From assembly GCF_006345805.1 (NCBI RefSeq), contig NW_021834451.1, forward strand, positions 1 to 49,835: a stretch of DNA of 49,835 nucleotides, in the 5' to 3' direction. Origin of the DNA: Octopus sinensis. Lineage: Eukaryota. The translations under genes were made by a program, and so were the position numbers. Under the pieces are notes generated by a model, which searched no databases, was not told the origin of the DNA, and saw only the letters and a program-made list of their open reading frames with translations. Shown here piece after piece: positions 2,816-23,642 of this stretch. Each line of letters begins with the position of its first letter. Within the stretch, counting starts at the first letter, position 1.

Positions 2816-2989
2816 ATATATATATATATATATATATTATATATACATCGTCGTTACACGAGCAAAGCCATTTGCAAGAAGACTTACTGAAAGCCGGAGT
2901 AAAACAAAGTTTAAAGCTGTTCACTGAATAACCAAGACTACACAACCATCATCAACCAGTCTGGACTTTGCGCAAGAGAAAGTCTACTG

Positions 2990-3035
2990 AGCTTTTTATA
3001 TAAATACCGTTCGGATCTGATAAGTATGTAACATT
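2990..3035 (+). promoter_or_regulatory. Putative TATA box and short non-coding leader exon donor of gene 1
   Basis: TATATAAATA followed by ...TGATAAGTAT|GTAACA. Near-identical at about 21958-21997 upstream of gene 2; similar TGATAAGCAG|GTAACG at about 31168-31184 upstream of gene 3. Each signal exon starts with a splice acceptor a few nt before its ATG, which requires an upstream non-coding exon. Confidence 0.4.
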
Positions 3036-3163
3036 TAAATTATTCATTGTTGCTCTATGTGATTAAGTAATAGCAATAGACAGAGTATGTTATGGTAATG
3101 ATGATGGTGGCAGTGGTTGAGCTTAAGCCGTTTGTTGCCTGTTTGCATGTGTACAGTCCAAGA

Positions 3164-3548
3164 GTGGAGACGCAATGGCCCAGTGGTTAGGGCAGCGGAC
3201 TCGCGGTCATAGGATCGCGGTTTCGATTCCCAGACCGGGCGTTTGTGAGTGTTTATTGAGCGAAAACACCTAAAGCTCCACGAGGCTCTGGCAGGGCATG
3301 GTGGTGATCCCTGCTGTACTCTTTCACCACAACTTTCTCTCACTCTTACTTCCTGTTTCTGTTGTACCTGTATTTCAAAGGGCCGGCCTTGTCACTCTCT
3401 GTGTCACGCTGAATATCCCCGAGAACTACGTTAAGGGTACACGTGTCTGTGGAGTGCTCAGCCACTTACACGTTAATTTCACGAGCAGGCTGTTCCGTTG
3501 ATTCGGATCAACAGGAACCCTCGTCGTCGTAACCGACGGAGTGCTTCC
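3164..3548 (+). mobile_element. tRNA-derived SINE family B with 12-bp TSD TACAGTCCAAGA
   Basis: A box TGGCCCAGTGG, B box GTTTCGATTCC; TSD at 3152-3163 and 3549-3560; empty site at 22115-22126. Confidence 0.9.
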
Positions 3549-4145
3549 TACAGTCCAAGATCCGCAAAGAGAGAGGATAACCGGAATGATTTACTGATTT
3601 TCACTTTACATCTCATCGATTGTGTTTGATGAAAGTGAATCAGTTGACCCTTTAGTTTTGGATAAAGTCGAGCTTTTGTAGTGTTTGATTTTGGTCATAG
3701 AAAATAGAGAAAATACTTTTGACAGTGTACATTTCACATAGAACATTCTGTCAAATGGAAAGTGACAAGCCTTACATATTTGTTTGCGACAGAAATAATA
3801 ATAATAATAATAATAATATAGAAGTCAGAAAACCTTGAAGTAAGAACATTTCATTCACTGTTAACAGTATGCAGGATCTTTACGGAGAAATGCTTCGAAG
3901 GCGTCGTCTTCACCAAAATATATACTTACATTCGTATTTTTGGTGCAATTAAATCTACATTAGTACTATTGGTGCAATTAAATTAGGTATATTACTAATT
4001 GTTTAAATGGTAAAGCTTGGATTTTCAGAACAGCTAAAAGGTAGTTTTTTTTACCTAAATTTCAGCTGTAGACTTTTGCTTCTTTGTAAGAAAAATGCTT
4101 TTGTATTAATGACTCTCGATGTTATATTTGTCTATCATCAGGTGC

Positions 4146-4212
4146 ATGATGAAAAGCATCAGTGTCCTATTGTTTTGTGTATTCATTTCATACACATTCT
4201 CGGTTAAAAGAG
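4146..4212 (+). CDS. Knottin prepropeptide gene 1, coding exon 1 (signal peptide MMKSISVLLFCVFISYTFSVKR)
   Basis: Acceptor CATCAG|GTGC before the ATG; 22 codons + 1 nt; donor G|GTAAGT (phase 1); hydrophobic N-terminal stretch; near-identical paralog at 22870. Confidence 0.85.
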
Positions 4213-5380
4213 GTAAGTATATTTAGAAATTTCTTTTATTTCATAGCAATCCGAAATGTAGTGGGGGAAAAGGGGGGAAATAGAAAGGTGGAGAGGAGGA
4301 AAATGAATAACGCCACCTCGGCGGTCTTTTGGTTGTACCCCATTTATATGCAATTTCAGCTTTTAAATAAATAACACACTTTTTATATACACAACTCTTA
4401 GACCAAGTATACGGAATTAAGATTCTTCTAAATAATATATAACATTTAATTAACACTATGACTGATACAAATCGGGGAGACTTCTAGTAGTGTGCTCTCA
4501 TCTGTTACTCCTGTATTTGATCAGAACATAAACATGGACGAAATGCCGCTGAGCATATTGTCCGTCGAGCTAACAATTCTGCCGGTTCTCCGCCGCCTTT
4601 TGAATTCTTAATTACTAAAATAATTACAGAAGAGAATCAGCAAGTGCTGTATACAATGTTTCATGTGTCTTTTGTTTGTTTTCTTGTCATTCCTTTTTAT
4701 TGTTTCATTGGTTTTTATCTCCTTGTATGTATTAAAAATATCCATTACTACAGTGATGAGCCATATTTAAGTGTCTGAGTGAGGAAATGTGAGCTCCAGT
4801 CGTCAGGATCCCCCCATCTTGTTTCAGATGGTGTTATCATAAATACATTCTCTTCTATTCAATGAATTATACATCATCCTCCATTTGATACATTATCCTC
4901 TATTTAATGAATTACTATACATGCATATAGTATATAGAATATATATGTGTGTGTGTTTGTTTACGTATTTATATATGGTTATTACATATATATAGTATAT
5001 AGTATTTAATATTTTACTAAGAATGAAATATTTCTATAAGTTTGTGGTTGAGTATCTGCGGCTACTGGATGTTATATTTCCTCTGTGTTATTATCATGCT
5101 GAGAGAATATGTTTATGAATGAGTGATTGAATTAAATATAATTAAGATATCCACTACGATCGTTTCTTGTCACTTCTATGGACATTCATCAGGTGGTTTC
5201 AAGACCTAAAATATAATCAATATTTTTAAGATATAAATTTGAAATTATCCTCTATTATACATTATCCTCTATTTAATGAGTTACTTTTTGAGTGTTTCAT
5301 GGGTATTTTGTGTATTTCTACGCGAAACTTTGGTAAATGGATATCTAATTCTTTCATATATATTTTAATATCTCTTTTAG

Positions 5381-5411
5381 ATGTCGCTCCCTTGACTAAA
5401 ATGCTTCTAAG
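5381..5411 (+). CDS. Gene 1, coding exon 2 (propeptide DVAPLTKMLLS)
   Basis: Acceptor CTTTTAG|, donor AG|GTAAGA; 31 nt (2+27+2) keeps frame between the phase-1 and phase-2 introns; paralog at 23561 also begins DVAP. Confidence 0.8.
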
Positions 5412-8333: not shown

Positions 8334-8452
8334 GTGTTAATGAAATTGAGCAGCTGAACTGAGGTGAAAACTTGTTACAAAGCCAGGGCTACGTAGTATT
8401 AACTGCTCACTACTTTATGTAACTCGAAGCGCACTAGGGCTATATTTGTGTT

Positions 8453-8906
8453 AAGGATCTTTTCCTTTTGATGGGCAACTCGATTAATTAATTTTCTATA
8501 ACTAAACACTTTGAAACTTCGGATACTGGTAGAATGTGTCATACAGAACATCCTTTACTCTTAGCGTTGTTGAGAAAAGTTTATATTTTCGAAGTTATTT
8601 CGTGTTAAAGTTGTCGTATTTCGGTAATATCAACCAATCAATGACGCGTATTCAGCTGAATAAAATTTCTGCTGTTGTTTGTCAACAACTATCGGCGGAG
8701 TATGTTTCGTTTGTCACTGTTATTTATGACATCGTTCGTGCTTTTGTACTTTAATACGAAATAACTTCGAAAATAGAAACTTTTCTCAACAACGCTAAGA
8801 GTAAAAGATGTTCTATATGACACATTCTACCAGTATCCGAAGTTTCAAAGTGTTTAGTTGAAGAAAAATAATTGTTCTAGCTGCCCACGAAAACGAAAAG
8901 ATCCTT
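8453..8906. mobile_element. Foldback/MITE-like inverted-repeat element
   Basis: About 170-bp imperfect terminal inverted arms; TGTT on both sides; empty site near 24940 in gene 2. Confidence 0.75.
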
Positions 8907-10190: not shown

Positions 10191-10814
10191 GGATCTTTAC
10201 CTTTTGACCGACAGATTTTTAAAATAATTCTTTGTAACTAAACACTTTGAAACTTCGGACACTGGTAGAATGTGCCTTATAAAACATCATTTACTCTTAG
10301 CATTTTTGAGAAAAACTTATATTTACGAAGTTATTTCACGTTAAAGTTGTCCTATTTCGGTAATTTTAACCAATCAATGACATGTATTCAGCTGAATAAT
10401 ATTACTGCTGTTGTTTGTCAACAAGAATTTCCGGTGGTGTATATTTCGTTTGTCACTGTTATTTATGACAACCCTAACCCTAAAACCCTAACCCTAACCC
10501 TAAAATCTTAAAGCTAAAACCAGTACAAACGCACGAATGATGTCATAAATAACAATGATAAACGAAAAATACACCACCGATAGTTGTTGACAAACAACGG
10601 CATTAATTTTATTCAGCTGTATACACGTCATTGATTGGTTGAAATTACCGAAATACGGGAACTTTAACGTGAAATAACTTCGTAAATATAAGTTTTTCTC
10701 AAAAAACTTCGAGTAAAAGATGTTTTATATGAAACATTCTACCAGTGTCCGAAGTTTCAAAGTGTTTAGTTACAAAAAACTATTTTAAAAATCTGTCGGT
10801 CAAAAGGTAGATCC
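10191..10814. mobile_element. Foldback/MITE-like element with central (CCCTAA)n tract
   Basis: About 280-bp inverted arms, same family as 8453-8906; ACCCTA repeats at 10470-10503. Confidence 0.8.
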
Positions 10815-11163
10815 GAAATTTATTCCTTTAGGTCAAAATAGTGACGATAATTGGAACACAGGTAGTCAATAAGTGTGACATTGGAATTCTTGATATATCC
10901 TTATATACCAAGTCACTTACAAATTCGAGAAAATACACTAAGTAATAGTTAAAAGAAAAGAAAGAATTGACTTGTGGTACTTGTTTCGGATCAGCATGTT
11001 GTGAGTTCAAGTCCCGTCAGATTCTTTAGTTTTATCGACATCGATAAAATAAATACCATTATCGTTTAATCCCTTTCCCCTATACATTTCCTTGCCTTTT
11101 CCTTTAATGTGAACCCCTAATTAAATAATATTTTGTATTCTCTATTATATTTTGTATTTACAG

Positions 11164-11299
11164 TGAAAGGCTTAAGAGAGCTTCATGTTCAATAGCGGGT
11201 TGCTGGCTTCACAAACTTAATCGACATTGTGGATGCTGCCCCGGTTACAAATGTTCACTTACAGCAACTTATTGCCTCTGTTATTTGGGTAGCCCCTAA
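11164..11299 (+). CDS. Gene 1, coding exon 3 (ERLKR|ASCSIAGCWLHKLNRHCGCCPGYKCSLTATYCLCYLGSP*), 8-Cys mature peptide; spliced product 77 aa
   Basis: Acceptor TATTTACAG|, phase 2; RLKR furin-type site followed by 8 Cys including a CC doublet; stop TAA 11297-11299; too short for the ORF track. Confidence 0.85.
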
Positions 11300-11539
11300 C
11301 ACCTGGTTCTCGGACCATGATTCACGGGACTAATAATATTATACTCCAAACCGTAATCGCTTTTCTGGTTTTTCTCGTAAATTTACCATCTAATTGGCGT
11401 GCTGCTCTGGTGAAGTTTGAAGGTAAACTACAGACGTAAGATTGTTTTTATTGAAGGCGAAAATCGATGAGAAGAAATGCAGACAAAACAGCAAAAATAC
11501 ACTCAACAAGAACATCAACAACATGCTGCTATTACTTCT

Positions 11540-11810
11540 TCCTCCTCCTCCCCTTCTTCGTCCTTCCCCTTCTTCATCCTCCTTCTTTCTCCTCCTCCTT
11601 CCCTCCCTCTTCCTCCCCACTTCCTCCACCTCCTCATCCTCCCCACTTCCACCTCCTCCTCTCATCCTCTTCCCCCTCCTCCTCCTCATCCCCTCCCGTC
11701 TTCACTCCTCCCATTCTCCTCTTCCCCCTCCTCCTCCTCATTCCCTCCCCTCTTCAACCCTCCCCTCTTCACCACTCCCCACTTCCTCCTCCTCCTCCTC
11801 CTCCTCCTCT
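11540..11810. repeat. Degenerate (CCT)n polypyrimidine tract in the gene 1 3' region
   Basis: Direct reading. Confidence 0.9.
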
Positions 11811-12098
11811 TATCTAATCAATCGTCAGATCCTACAACAGTAGAAAACTATGAATAACCATTAAGAGACACAGTGAAATATAAAATATTAACGAGCAGAA
11901 GTTTGATTTTGTACTTTATCCTGGAAAGAAATTCACGTATGTTGCACCAAGAACTGAAATGGTAAAACAAGAGAAAATCTGCAAACCATAATCTACAACT
12001 ATAAGTTTTCTAACAAACCGAAATTAATACGACGAATGTATTTAATATCTAATATATTTATGCTATTAATCCGTCAAATTTTAATGAAATTCCAATGA

Positions 12099-12104
12099 AA
12101 TAAA
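12099..12104 (+). terminator. Candidate polyadenylation signal AATAAA of gene 1 (homologs at 26769-26774 and 28088-28093)
   Basis: Hexamer in a 3' block conserved behind all three homologous terminal exons; not experimentally supported. Confidence 0.4.
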
Positions 12105-12630
12105 TTTATTAAAGCATCGCAAGTACTTGGTGTTTCGTTATTCGCTGTGCTATTTGTTTTTAAGCTATTGAAACGGTAAGAAAATCTCAGTGCTTCGTTC
12201 TTCGCTGTGATGTTGGCCTTTAAGTTATGGATTTGGATGTTAAGATTTTACATTGCAGCGTCACACTATATTATTGTAAAAAAGAGGGAGAAAGGAAAAA
12301 AGGGAGTTAAGAATAAAAATGCATGCGGTAAAGCAGTAGAAGATGGAGTGGGAGGGAGCGATGGGCAACATACCCCAGAATTAATGATGTGCTCAGTCGC
12401 ATCCCGCGGCGATGGGTGAGATGACGTAGCTGCAGAGAATGGCCAACGACCCTTGTTGTAGCTGCCACGCCACATCCCGGGTTGCACTTGGTTTGATGAT
12501 GATTTTTCTGTAATTAATTGCAAGTTGGGCGACCACGAAGTCTCGTGCATTTTCTTGACTGAGTTGCAAAATGGTAGAAAAAATGTCAAATAATGACACA
12601 CACACATATACATATACCCACACATGTACA

Positions 12631-12729
<99 letters not shown>

Positions 12730-13278: not shown

Positions 13279-14389
13279 GATTGATTGATTGATTGACTGA
13301 TTGATTCTAGTTTCAGCTCATGAGCTGTGGCCATGCTGGGGCACCGCCATTTGGTGTTGCTACTTGGTTTTACTTCACGAAAGCTTTTTAGCAACTGCCA
13401 TTTGGTGCATGAGAGAGTTCGATGCAGCTGCCCTCATCTGCACCTCCTGCCGTGAAGTTGGTTCATCTGGGACACCTGACAGGAAGAGATCCAGTTCCAT
13501 TTTAAAGACATCTGCATCCACCCCATGCAGGTCTCTCAGGTTCTTCGGGAGGATATTGAAGAGCTGTGGGCCTCGGAAGCCCAGGCTATCACAGTATCTT
13601 GTCCTACATCTTGATGGCAAATTTGGAGTCCTAGGCACCACGCAGTGGCGCCCAGTTCTGGCATTTGTGTAACTCTCGATACCAAAGTTTGGGACACGTC
13701 CCTCCAGGATCTTCCAGATGTATATTATGGCATATCTTTCCCGCCTACGCTCCAAGGAATATAGTTTTAATCTCTTGAGTCTTTCCCAGTAGCTTACATT
13801 CTGCATAGAGGCTATCTTCTTCGTGTAGCTACGCTGGATCGCCTCGAGCTCTGTGATCAACTTGACACTGGATGGTGACCATAACTGAGAGCAATAGTCA
13901 AAGTGGCTTAGGACAAGTGTCCTCCAGAGGACCATCATGGTTTCTTGTTCTCTTGTTCTAAAGGTTCTGAGAATCCATCCAGCCAGCCGTCTACATTTTA
14001 TTGCCAGTTTAGCAACATGTACATGAAAGGTCGCGTCATCACTCATGTGAATACCCAGGTCACGCACTGATTGTGCCTCTGGGATTGCAATCCCTCCGGG
14101 TCCAGTGTATTCATTGGGTGTTGCATTCAGTTTTGCATGCTGATAGTATAAAGCTTGAAACTTTTCAGCATTGAACTGCATGCTATTCTTTTCAGCCCAC
14201 TTGTATATTTCGTCCAGCTCACATTGCAGGTGCTTAGTGTCTTCAGGGTTCTGTATTGCCTGTGAAACTTTTGTATCATCTGCATAACTTGTGATCGTGG
14301 CTCTCTGCGTGGCTGAGGGCATGTCTGAGAGGGCCATTATGAACAGTAGTGGTCCCAAAACAGTGCCCTGCGGAACACCGCTCACTATT

Positions 14390-21750: not shown

Positions 21751-22869
21751 TGTGTGTGTGTGTGTGTGTATATATATTTAAATGAATGTGCGAACGTGTG
21801 TATGTATGTAAATAAAAAATATAAAGTCTGCAAATTGAGAAAAACAAAAAACGAAAGCCGGAGTAAGCAAAGTTTAAAGCTGTTCACTGAATAACCAAGA
21901 CTACACAACCATCATCAACCAGTTTGGACTTTGCGCAAGAGAAAGTCTACTGAGCTTTTTATATAAATACCGTTCGGATCTGATAAGTATGTAACATTTA
22001 AATTATTCATTGTTGCTCTATGTGATTAAGTAATAGCAATAGACAGAGTATGTTATGGTAATGATGATGGTGACAGTGGTTGAGCTTAAGCCGTTTGTTG
22101 CCTGTTTGCATGTGTACAGTCCAAGATCCGCAAAGAGAGAGGATAACCGGAATGATTTACTGATTTTCACTTTACATCTCATCGATTGTGTTTGATGAAA
22201 GTGAATTAGTTGACCCTTAAGTTTTGGATAAAGTCGAGCTTTTGTAGTGTTTGTTTTTTGTATTACGCAAATCAGTTCTTAAAGAACAAGTGAGCATATT
22301 TATGCTGGATGTTTGTGTTATGCATTTCTCGTTATTTTACGGAAGATGTTCCCATTTTCTTACTTTATGTCGACACATTCACATCCATCAAACTCTGCTG
22401 ATCTTTGCAACAATTCCTAATTGCGGCCCTCTGTTCGATAGAACACTATTTGACCAATTTTGCTATCGGTGGGTCGCTGCTTGTATTTAGTTGACTCAAC
22501 GCTATTCTTTGTGTAGAATGGTGTGAATACATTCTGCTTCTGCTGTAGCTTTGACATAGCAGTCAAAACAATGCGGTTTTCATATAGAATTTTAGATGCT
22601 GTGTGTGTGTGCGTGTGTTTGGCGTCATCTTCACCAAAATATATACTTACATTCGTATTTTTGGTGCAATTAAATCTACATTAGTACTATTGGTGCAGTT
22701 AAATTAGGTATATTACTAATTGTTTAAATGGTAAAGCTTGGATTTTCAGAACAGCTAAAAGGTAGTTTTTTTTACCTAAATTTCAGCTGTAGACTTTTGC
22801 TTCTTTGTAAGAAAAATGCTTTTGTATTAATGACTCTCGATGTTATATTTGTCTATCATCAGGTGCAAG

Positions 22870-22933
22870 ATGAAAGGCATCAGTGTCCTATTGCTTTGTG
22901 TATTCATTTCATACACATTCTCGGTTAAAAAAG
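22870..22933 (+). CDS. Knottin prepropeptide gene 2, coding exon 1 (signal peptide MKGISVLLLCVFISYTFSVKK)
   Basis: Acceptor CATCAG|, 21 codons + 1 nt, donor G|GTAAGA; paralog of 4146-4212. Confidence 0.85.
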
Positions 22934-23560
22934 GTAAGAATATATAGAAATTTCTTTTATTTTATAGCAATCCGAAATGTAGTGGGGGAAAAGGGGGGAA
23001 ATAGAAAGGTGGAGAGGAGGAAAATGAATAACGCCACCTCGGCGGTCTTTTGGTTGTACCCCATTTATATGCAATTTCAGCTTTTAAATAAATAACACAC
23101 TTTTTATATACACAACTCTTAGACCAAGTATACGGAATTAAGATTCTTCTAAATAATATATAACATTTAATTAACACTATGACTGATACAAATCGGGGAG
23201 ACTTCTAGTAGTGTGCTCTCATCTGTTACTCCTGTATTTGATCAGAACATAAACATGGACGAAATGCCGCTGAGCATATTGTCCGTCGAGCTAACAATTC
23301 TGCCGGTTCTCCATATTTAAGTATCTGAGTGAGGAAATGTGAGCTCCAGTCGTCATGATCCCCCGTCTTGTTTCAGATGGTGTTATCATAAATACATTCT
23401 CTTCTATTCAATGAATTATACATCATCCTCCATTTGATACATTATCCTCTATTTAATGAATTACCTGTTGAGTGTTGCATGGGTATTTTGTGTATTTCTA
23501 CACGAAACTTTGGTAAATGGATATTTACTTCTTTCATTTATATTTTGATATCTCTTTCAG

Positions 23561-23642
23561 ATGTCGCTCCCGTCCATCTAGAGACAGGAGATTATGTAAG
23601 TTTGAGTTTGAGTAATAGGAGTTTGAGTAATAGGACAAAAAG
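23561..23642 (+). CDS. Gene 2, coding exon 2 (propeptide DVAPVHLETGDYVSLSLSNRSLSNRTKS)
   Basis: Acceptor CTTTCAG|, donor AG|GTAAGA; 82 nt (2+78+2) keeps frame. Confidence 0.75.

Follow-up and report, generated by a model that had tools for sequence, protein, structure and literature searches.

Judging from its sequence, the terminal exon at positions 11164-11299 of the DNA stretch analysed here (49,835 nt of Octopus sinensis contig NW_021834451.1, RefSeq assembly GCF_006345805.1; hereafter the window) is best explained as part of a tandem, octopus-specific family of secreted precursors of knottin-type peptides with eight cysteines (Cys). Relative to other members of this family, the peptide encoded by the gene (gene 1) has lost one Cys and carries a new one elsewhere. 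Sequence comparison established that the resulting framework, C-C-CxCC-C-CxC, is a derived one that has so far been seen in gene 1 only, out of 14 family members. The most likely single reading of this difference, which is unproven and to which we assign a probability of about 0.4, is a compensated partner swap that would have evolved while the gene 1 peptide was under selection.

Gene 1, its relatives and the cysteine change

The three genes of this family in the window all lie on the forward strand. In gene 1, the coding part of exon 1 (4146-4212) encodes the signal peptide MMKSISVLLFCVFISYTFSVKR plus one base and ends in phase 1 at the donor G|GTAAGT, a junction of the same type as in the RefSeq models of the O. 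bimaculoides relatives. Its exon 1 block shares 98.7% identity with that of the middle gene. Exon 2 (5381-5411, 31 nt), which encodes DVAPLTKMLL between the acceptor tcttttag|AT and the phase 2 donor AAG|GTAAGA, was located by a splice and phase scan and by alignment with exon 2 of the other two genes; tblastx between introns detected repeats only when this exon was sought. The terminal exon follows a canonical acceptor (tatttacag|T at 11163/11164), and its coding part consists of the split codon AG|T (Ser), ERLKR, a 39-residue peptide with eight Cys and a TAA stop codon. The frame from 11165 translates to ERLKRASCSIAGCWLHKLNRHCGCCPGYKCSLTATYCLCYLGSP and stops at 11297-11299. The exon product is ERLKR followed by ASCSIAGCWLHKLNRHCGCCPGYKCSLTATYCLCYLGSP, and the full precursor reads MMKSISVLLFCVFISYTFSVKR-DVAPLTKMLL-S-ERLKR and then the 39-residue peptide. 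A Lys-Arg dibasic site (11174-11179) directly precedes the predicted mature peptide and is matched by KR or KK at the equivalent place in most relatives; the precursor would presumably be cleaved there. Each exon of gene 1 is intact; the splice sites are canonical, the phases (1 and 2) agree with those of the O. bimaculoides RefSeq models, and this copy may still be expressed.

A six-frame scan of the window revealed three more exons of the gene 1 terminal type. Two of them, 3a (25858-26005) and 3b (27293-27506), are tandem terminal exons of the middle gene (exon 1, 22870-22933; exon 2, 23561-23642; phases 1 and 2). They encode different knottin domains whose Cys cores (25886-25981 and 27318-27413, respectively) both have the ancestral framework with the spacing C-4-C-10-CC-4-C-1-C-4-C-1-C. 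Exon 3b ends in an intact 30-residue tail closing with NLPSY and a stop codon. The tail of 3a is cut off by an 86-nt tandem repeat (25999-26192; 2.3 copies, 99% identical) that lies over the tail and the 3' flank and puts a TAA eight codons after the last Cys; this repeat is a very recent rearrangement. The remaining, more distant exon (41200-41446; Cys core 41228-41344) belongs to a third gene (exon 1, 34122-34194; exon 2, 36521-36572; phases 1 and 2) with the spacing C-6-C-10-CC-4-CxC-9-CxC, and it was used as the outgroup. The signal-peptide exons of all three genes end in phase 1 at G|GTAAGT-type donors, and their middle exons share the donor AAG|GTAAGA in phase 2. The last intron splits an Arg codon (AG|G) in the third gene, but a Ser codon (AG|T) in the other two.

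The third gene represents a divergent subfamily: its signal peptide (MMKSTVALYFCFCVL...) differs, its pro-region is acidic and its loops are longer. Its tail runs into a TA microsatellite. No DNA counterpart of it was detected within the approximately 80 kb of O. bimaculoides loci that we compared.

The 32-codon cores of gene 1, 3a and 3b could be aligned without gaps, as the original prediction had claimed, and both codon differences that it had described were recovered. At the position of Cys VI, gene 1 has CTT (Leu, mature residue 27; 11258-11260) opposite TGT in 3a and 3b, a change that requires two substitutions. Two residues before CC, it has TGT (Cys, mature residue 17; 11228-11230) where 3a and 3b have TAT (Tyr), which differs by a single A-to-G transition. 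The even number of Cys is also kept, in agreement with that prediction, and the gene 1 spacing is C-4-C-8-C-1-CC-4-C-6-C-1-C. Cys VII (mature residue 32; 11273-11275), the former partner of Cys VI, is now orphaned; the assignment of VI and VII as a hairpin staple was taken from the literature and from a structural model of 3a, in which the corresponding positions 29 and 34 are opposed. Gene 1 retains the family-typical Ser after Cys I and the Gly in CCxGxxC.

An alignment of the four full precursors of the window was used as the query against O. bimaculoides RefSeq proteins, and relatives were detected on one chromosome (LOC128250513, -514, -516, -517, -536 and -541). Comparison of the loci around four of these proteins, about 80 kb of that chromosome, revealed the same three exons, phases and splice motifs as well as further unannotated mature exons. 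Together with 3a, 3b and the third gene, ten O. bimaculoides mature domains formed a comparison set of 13 relatives. Cys VI and the rest of C-C-CC-CxC-CxC are kept in all 13, and the position two residues before CC is never Cys; gene 1 is therefore the derived and unique member, and the earlier claim that it departs from an ancestral framework is borne out. One-to-one orthology with the O. bimaculoides genes was not resolvable: LOC128250513 was the best match (70-84%) for the flanks of gene 1 and likewise for those of the middle gene.

The tandem arrangement of terminal exons is also present in O. bimaculoides (locus L002, 21932-22130 and 22869-23087), and in LOC128250541 it is essentially the mature exon that distinguishes the RefSeq isoforms X2 and X3 (P0006 versus P0010). 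Together with the tandem exons 3a and 3b, this suggests that alternative terminal exons yield different peptides from one signal and pro region.

The sole annotated protein from this region (about 5402-27500) is CAI9738877.1 (P0001), an O. vulgaris "hypothetical predicted protein". It is chimeric: it begins inside gene 1 exon 2 (MLLS-ERLKR) and joins part of gene 1 exons 2 and 3 to exon 2, 3a and, out of frame, 3b of the middle gene. The three real genes of the window are unannotated. When a profile of the four peptides was compared with 1.84 billion representatives, only this chimeric protein and one unrelated repeat protein were detected. A protein word search with the concatenation of exons 1 and 3 returned nothing; it also missed P0001, which makes it a weak negative. 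In the protein databases searched, family members were found only among O. bimaculoides RefSeq entries, with none from O. sinensis or other cephalopods, and these missing records may reflect overlooked small genes rather than true absence. Neither the four mature peptides nor the two O. bimaculoides proteins compared with Pfam gave a match. A search for octopus or cephalopod knottin-like peptides, and for the peptide strings themselves, found no relevant literature.

Probable relationship to CCWamide and agatoxin-like peptides

The precursors of this family share a common plan, in which a signal peptide is followed by a short pro-region that closes with Lys-Arg, and the last exon encodes the C-C-CC-CxC-CxC domain. 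A similar plan has been described for the protostome CCWamide/agatoxin-like peptides (ALPs), whose short three-exon precursors carry an eight-Cys peptide in the last exon and a conserved phase 2 intron that splits a basic codon; the splice patterns of Lottia and Notospermus CCWamides are phase 1 followed by phase 2 (Thiel et al. 2021, PMC8557429). The window genes and the O. bimaculoides RefSeq models have this three-exon architecture: exon 1 carries the signal peptide, exon 2 is short and variable, and the last exon encodes the entire eight-Cys peptide. Intron phases are 1 and then 2 in all three window genes. The third gene also splits an Arg codon, as CCWamides do, whereas gene 1 and the middle gene split Ser. 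The framework C-C-CC-CxC-CxC is present in 13 of the 14 octopus members, the exception being gene 1, which lacks Cys VI. An aromatic residue between Cys VI and VII is a further shared feature, and Lineus CCWamide has the spacing C-4-C-10-CC-4-CxC-8-CxC.

Comparison of a 12-sequence octopus profile with 24 spiralian CCWamides by hhalign gave a probability of 96% (E = 4.8e-9, score 38). In 100 permutations that preserved Cys register and loop composition, the score was 21.6 +/- 4.2 with a maximum of 32.1, and none reached 38. Single octopus peptides did not score above Cys-fixed shuffles against the CCWamide HMM. On the other hand, several features set the octopus family apart from CCWamide/ALP. 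It lacks the C-terminal aromatic-Gly-basic amidation signal and has a hydrophobic tail or an early stop (gene 1 and 3a) instead: gene 1 ends in CYLGSP and the tail of its relatives in NLPSY, whereas canonical CCWamides end in WG(R/K), e.g., LWGR. In addition, the hypervariability of the octopus mature region contrasts with the strong conservation of the canonical peptide, and a canonical CCWamide of O. vulgaris is encoded elsewhere. Because the profile similarity exceeds that of the Cys-preserving controls and the exon-phase architecture is shared, the octopus family probably derives from, or is at least built like, the CCWamide/ALP family, as a probable offshoot rather than a demonstrated member.

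Fold, tail loss and readings of gene 1

Structure prediction had been proposed as a check of the rewired bond, and its outcome was mixed: the hairpin was predicted, but the resemblance of gene 1 to knottins was weak. The AlphaFold model of gene 1 (single sequence, pLDDT 70.6) contains hairpin strands at residues 23-27 and 31-36, with Leu27 opposite Cys32, and the block of residues 11-20 has a mean pLDDT of 62. Its matches to knottins had a TM score of 0.43 or less and E > 1. The model of 3a (four-sequence alignment, pLDDT 68) contains a C-terminal hairpin with Cys VI opposite Cys VII, and it matched four-disulfide spider knottins (1kqh, TM 0.63/0.69, rmsd 2.1 A, E = 0.54; 2n6n, 41% identity). 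Sequence matches in PDB were likewise spider knottins, with E of about 0.05 to 1. Gene 1 has the knot Cys order C-C-CC-C-C, and the spacing of its six knot Cys is unchanged from that of its relatives. The knot premise appears reasonable in view of the 3a model, and the connectivity (I-IV, II-V and III-VI, with the third bond threading the ring) is a putative one.

The four-disulfide spider knottins (purotoxin-1, delta-palutoxins, U4-agatoxin-Ao1a and ACTX-Hi:OB4219) share CC-x4-CxC-x4-6-CxC and CCxGLxCxC with the octopus family. The family profile found its nearest PDB sequences, and the 3a model its nearest folds, among these toxins. They differ in belonging to another phylum and in being venom components, and the sequence match is not significant (E about 1). 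The extra bond of the four-disulfide framework is the hairpin staple (purotoxin-1, delta-palutoxin), and gene 1 has lost this typical staple pair. A Cys two residues before CC is also present in spider CxCC frameworks with 10-14 Cys (Phoneutria groups V-VIII, C10.0, lampotoxin family 1). In these, however, it always occurs with an additional Cys after the last CxC, and both CxC are kept, whereas gene 1 lacks such an extra C-terminal Cys as well as one of the two CxC; it therefore falls outside this group. The original prediction had also called the framework new. At the coarse level this does not hold, since C-C-C-CC-C-C-C is known from conotoxin framework XIII (de13a) and HWTX-XVIII, to which gene 1 can be likened by coarse Cys pattern; the loop spacing differs. 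The novelty may stand for the fine pattern CxCC-C-CxC, which was not found in the literature searched.

If the compensated partner swap took place, Cys VI, one half of the beta-hairpin staple, would have been replaced by Leu in the gene 1 lineage, and the Tyr two residues before CC by Cys. Three knot bonds (mature C3-C20, C8-C25 and C19-C34) would persist, and the orphaned Cys32 would pair with the new Cys17. This C17-C32 bond is a candidate arrived at by elimination only.

Gene 1 has also lost the C-terminal tail of the family. After the last Cys, the consensus SSQxMIHxxNxxILQTVIAFLIFLVNLPSY-stop follows in 3b and in nine O. bimaculoides domains out of ten; the tenth domain (P0010) has a different tail. 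The tail comprises 30 residues, is hydrophobic and looks like a GPI-attachment signal or a C-terminal propeptide. Divergent O. bimaculoides tails without the NLPSY end are those of P0009 (28 residues, ending in AILY) and P0006 (35 residues). Tail positions are 14820 in L001, 22043, 23010 and 27024 in L002, 13113 in L003 and 15093 in L004 of the O. bimaculoides loci, and 27414-27503 (in frame, 3b), 11317-11394 (out of frame, gene 1) and 26027-26104 in the window. In gene 1, a 35-nt linker (11282-11316), unrelated to the 12-nt SSQN-type linker of the family, introduces a frameshift and holds the stop codon. The tail homologue behind it (MIHGTNNIILQTVIAFLVFLVNLPSN) now lies in the 3' untranslated region (UTR). 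Any gene 1 product would be a tail-less soluble peptide of 39 residues, given that the exon lost its hydrophobic tail; the gene may be either a newly soluble form or a copy beginning to decay. A shared origin of the truncations of gene 1 and 3a was rejected, because the gene 1 linker has no similarity to the 3a insertion.

The gene 1 tail homologue differs from O. bimaculoides tails with pN of 0.13-0.20, compared with 0.23-0.24 for the in-frame 3b tail. Since it is no more diverged than that of 3b, the truncation looks recent, and the Cys changes may be older. For dating the truncation, tail dN/dS was uninformative (0.3-2.9 on 26 codons). Further downstream, the gene 1 3' UTR contains a conserved block (11812-12644; poly(A) signals at 12099 and 12108) that shares 99.6% identity with 26482-26953 and 97.7% with 27802-28629. 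Between the tail homologue and this block lies a CT-rich low-complexity insertion (11440-11810), which gives spurious proline- and serine-rich ORFs and has no counterpart in 3a or 3b.

Selection on the core was examined by comparison with 3a and 3b, from which gene 1 differs at 42 and 41 of 96 core nucleotides, respectively. Of the eight ancestral Cys, seven are present in gene 1, whereas of the 24 other residues only 3 are kept in the comparison with 3a (Fisher p = 2.6e-4) and 6 in that with 3b (Fisher p = 3.2e-3). In simulations of neutral drift at the observed divergence, at least seven Cys were kept with P = 1.5e-4 to 3.7e-4. As such retention is improbable under drift, it argues for past selection on the gene 1 scaffold during most of its history. 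In the same simulations, at least one new Cys appeared in the core by chance with P of 0.54-0.57, so the Cys gain alone proves nothing. Core dN/dS (0.54-0.66) was not diagnostic.

Divergence between the paralogous loci is unevenly distributed. Identity is 0.56 in the core and 0.89 in the last 84 nt of the intron, compared with 98.7% in the exon 1 block and 97.7-99.6% in the 3' UTR block, and intron stretches are 76-89% identical. The resulting mosaic (2889-4915 versus 21853-23464; 11812-12644 versus 26482-26953 and 27802-28629) suggests that gene conversion acted on the flanks, that hyper-divergence was focused on the core, or both. Conotoxin genes combine a conserved signal and conserved flanks with a hypervariable mature core and fixed Cys codons. 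The octopus cluster resembles them in this evolutionary style, but gene conversion of the flanks would account equally well for the pattern.

The compensated partner swap is favored by the intact exons, the retention of seven of the eight Cys, the even Cys count, the predicted hairpin and the documented role of the staple. Counting against it are the unique framework, the lost tail, the high chance of a new Cys (P about 0.55), the non-diagnostic dN/dS and the weak knottin match. Moreover, in spiders the partner of a Cys at this position is an added C-terminal Cys rather than one in the hairpin, and gene 1 is known from genomic sequence alone, its sole annotated model being chimeric. It is quite possible that the terminal exon of gene 1 is instead a decaying or dead copy, which was released from constraint and whose even Cys count is coincidental. 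Loss of the in-frame tail through an unrelated linker, a frameshift and a TAA would fit such decay, as would a framework found in 1 of 14 family members, an exon 2 of 31 nt compared with 54-82 nt in relatives, the ease with which a new Cys arises by chance, and an O. vulgaris annotation without a correct gene model. The very recent repeat that truncated the neighboring 3a implies that the cluster carries damaged copies. However, gene 1 still has its start codon, an open frame, every splice site, the KR site and the remaining seven Cys codons, and drift that hit the Cys VI codon twice should have struck other Cys codons too. Loss of a C-terminal tail need not kill a secreted peptide, and the low divergence of the tail homologue is again more in line with a late truncation that may have followed the Cys changes.

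Another explanation, which appears rather unlikely, is that the peptide is made and its eight Cys are oxidized with a different connectivity, such as a register shift (C17-C34, C19-C32), another isomer or a covalent dimer via C17 or C32. The CGCC cluster offers three closely spaced Cys for two partners in the last strand, the gene 1 model is moderately confident at residues 11-20 and less knottin-like than that of 3a, and prediction methods disagree on the connectivity of knottins with more than three bonds. Nevertheless, the unchanged spacing of the six knot Cys and the conserved Gly in CCxGxxC speak against an alternative pairing, for which there is no direct support. Mistakes in sequencing or assembly, or an allele private to the individual sequenced, are very improbable as the source of the two codon differences: although these are known from one genome only, they comprise three substitutions, and the core around them departs from its paralogues at 41-42 of 96 positions, which is not the pattern of errors. 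The fuller proposal, i.e., that gene 1 encodes a functional, tail-less secreted knottin with half of a disulfide replaced and not the whole pair lost, within an octopus-specific hypervariable CCWamide/agatoxin-like expansion that had not been described before, is somewhat doubtful, and we put it forward tentatively.

Cysteines in knottin families are usually gained or lost in pairs, and six-Cys spider toxins are thought to be derived from eight-Cys ones by the joint loss of Cys 6 and 7. If the compensated partner swap is true, the replacement of a single partner would represent a different route of disulfide framework evolution, and gene 1 would document a swap in which the fourth bond moves from the hairpin to a bridge between loop 2 and the hairpin. 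It would then also be a natural test of how well the knottin scaffold tolerates such re-siting, and the octopus expansion would be a counterpart to the way in which agatoxin-like peptides were recruited into spider venom. Of greater interest is probably the family context: an unannotated cluster that appears to be a lineage-specific, fast-diverging offshoot of a conserved protostome neuropeptide family. With its alternative terminal exons and conserved hydrophobic tail, this cluster makes it directly testable whether agatoxin-like peptides took on new roles in cephalopods.

Repeats and other features of the window

Rfam and tRNA scans of the window returned nothing. Large intronic palindromes are present at 10198-10809 and 40659-40902, with arm pairs of 49-122 nt that are 86-97% complementary. 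In gene 1 and in the third gene, the mature exon follows approximately 300-350 nt downstream of them, and related copies were found at 8451-8873. Between gene 1 and the middle gene, an ORF of 336 amino acids on the reverse strand (13375-14385) matches Pfam RVT_1 (E = 3.9e-11) and represents a fragment of a non-LTR retrotransposon; exact look-up of this ORF returned no record. Satellite arrays are located inside and downstream of the third gene (184 nt x6, 113 nt x4 and 201 nt x3; 34613-35690, 41890-42343 and 42282-42893, respectively), and a 1.7-kb (AT)n tract lies in the same region at 37866-39532. The window as a whole is AT-rich and microsatellite-rich, with SINE-like elements containing internal microsatellites scattered throughout.
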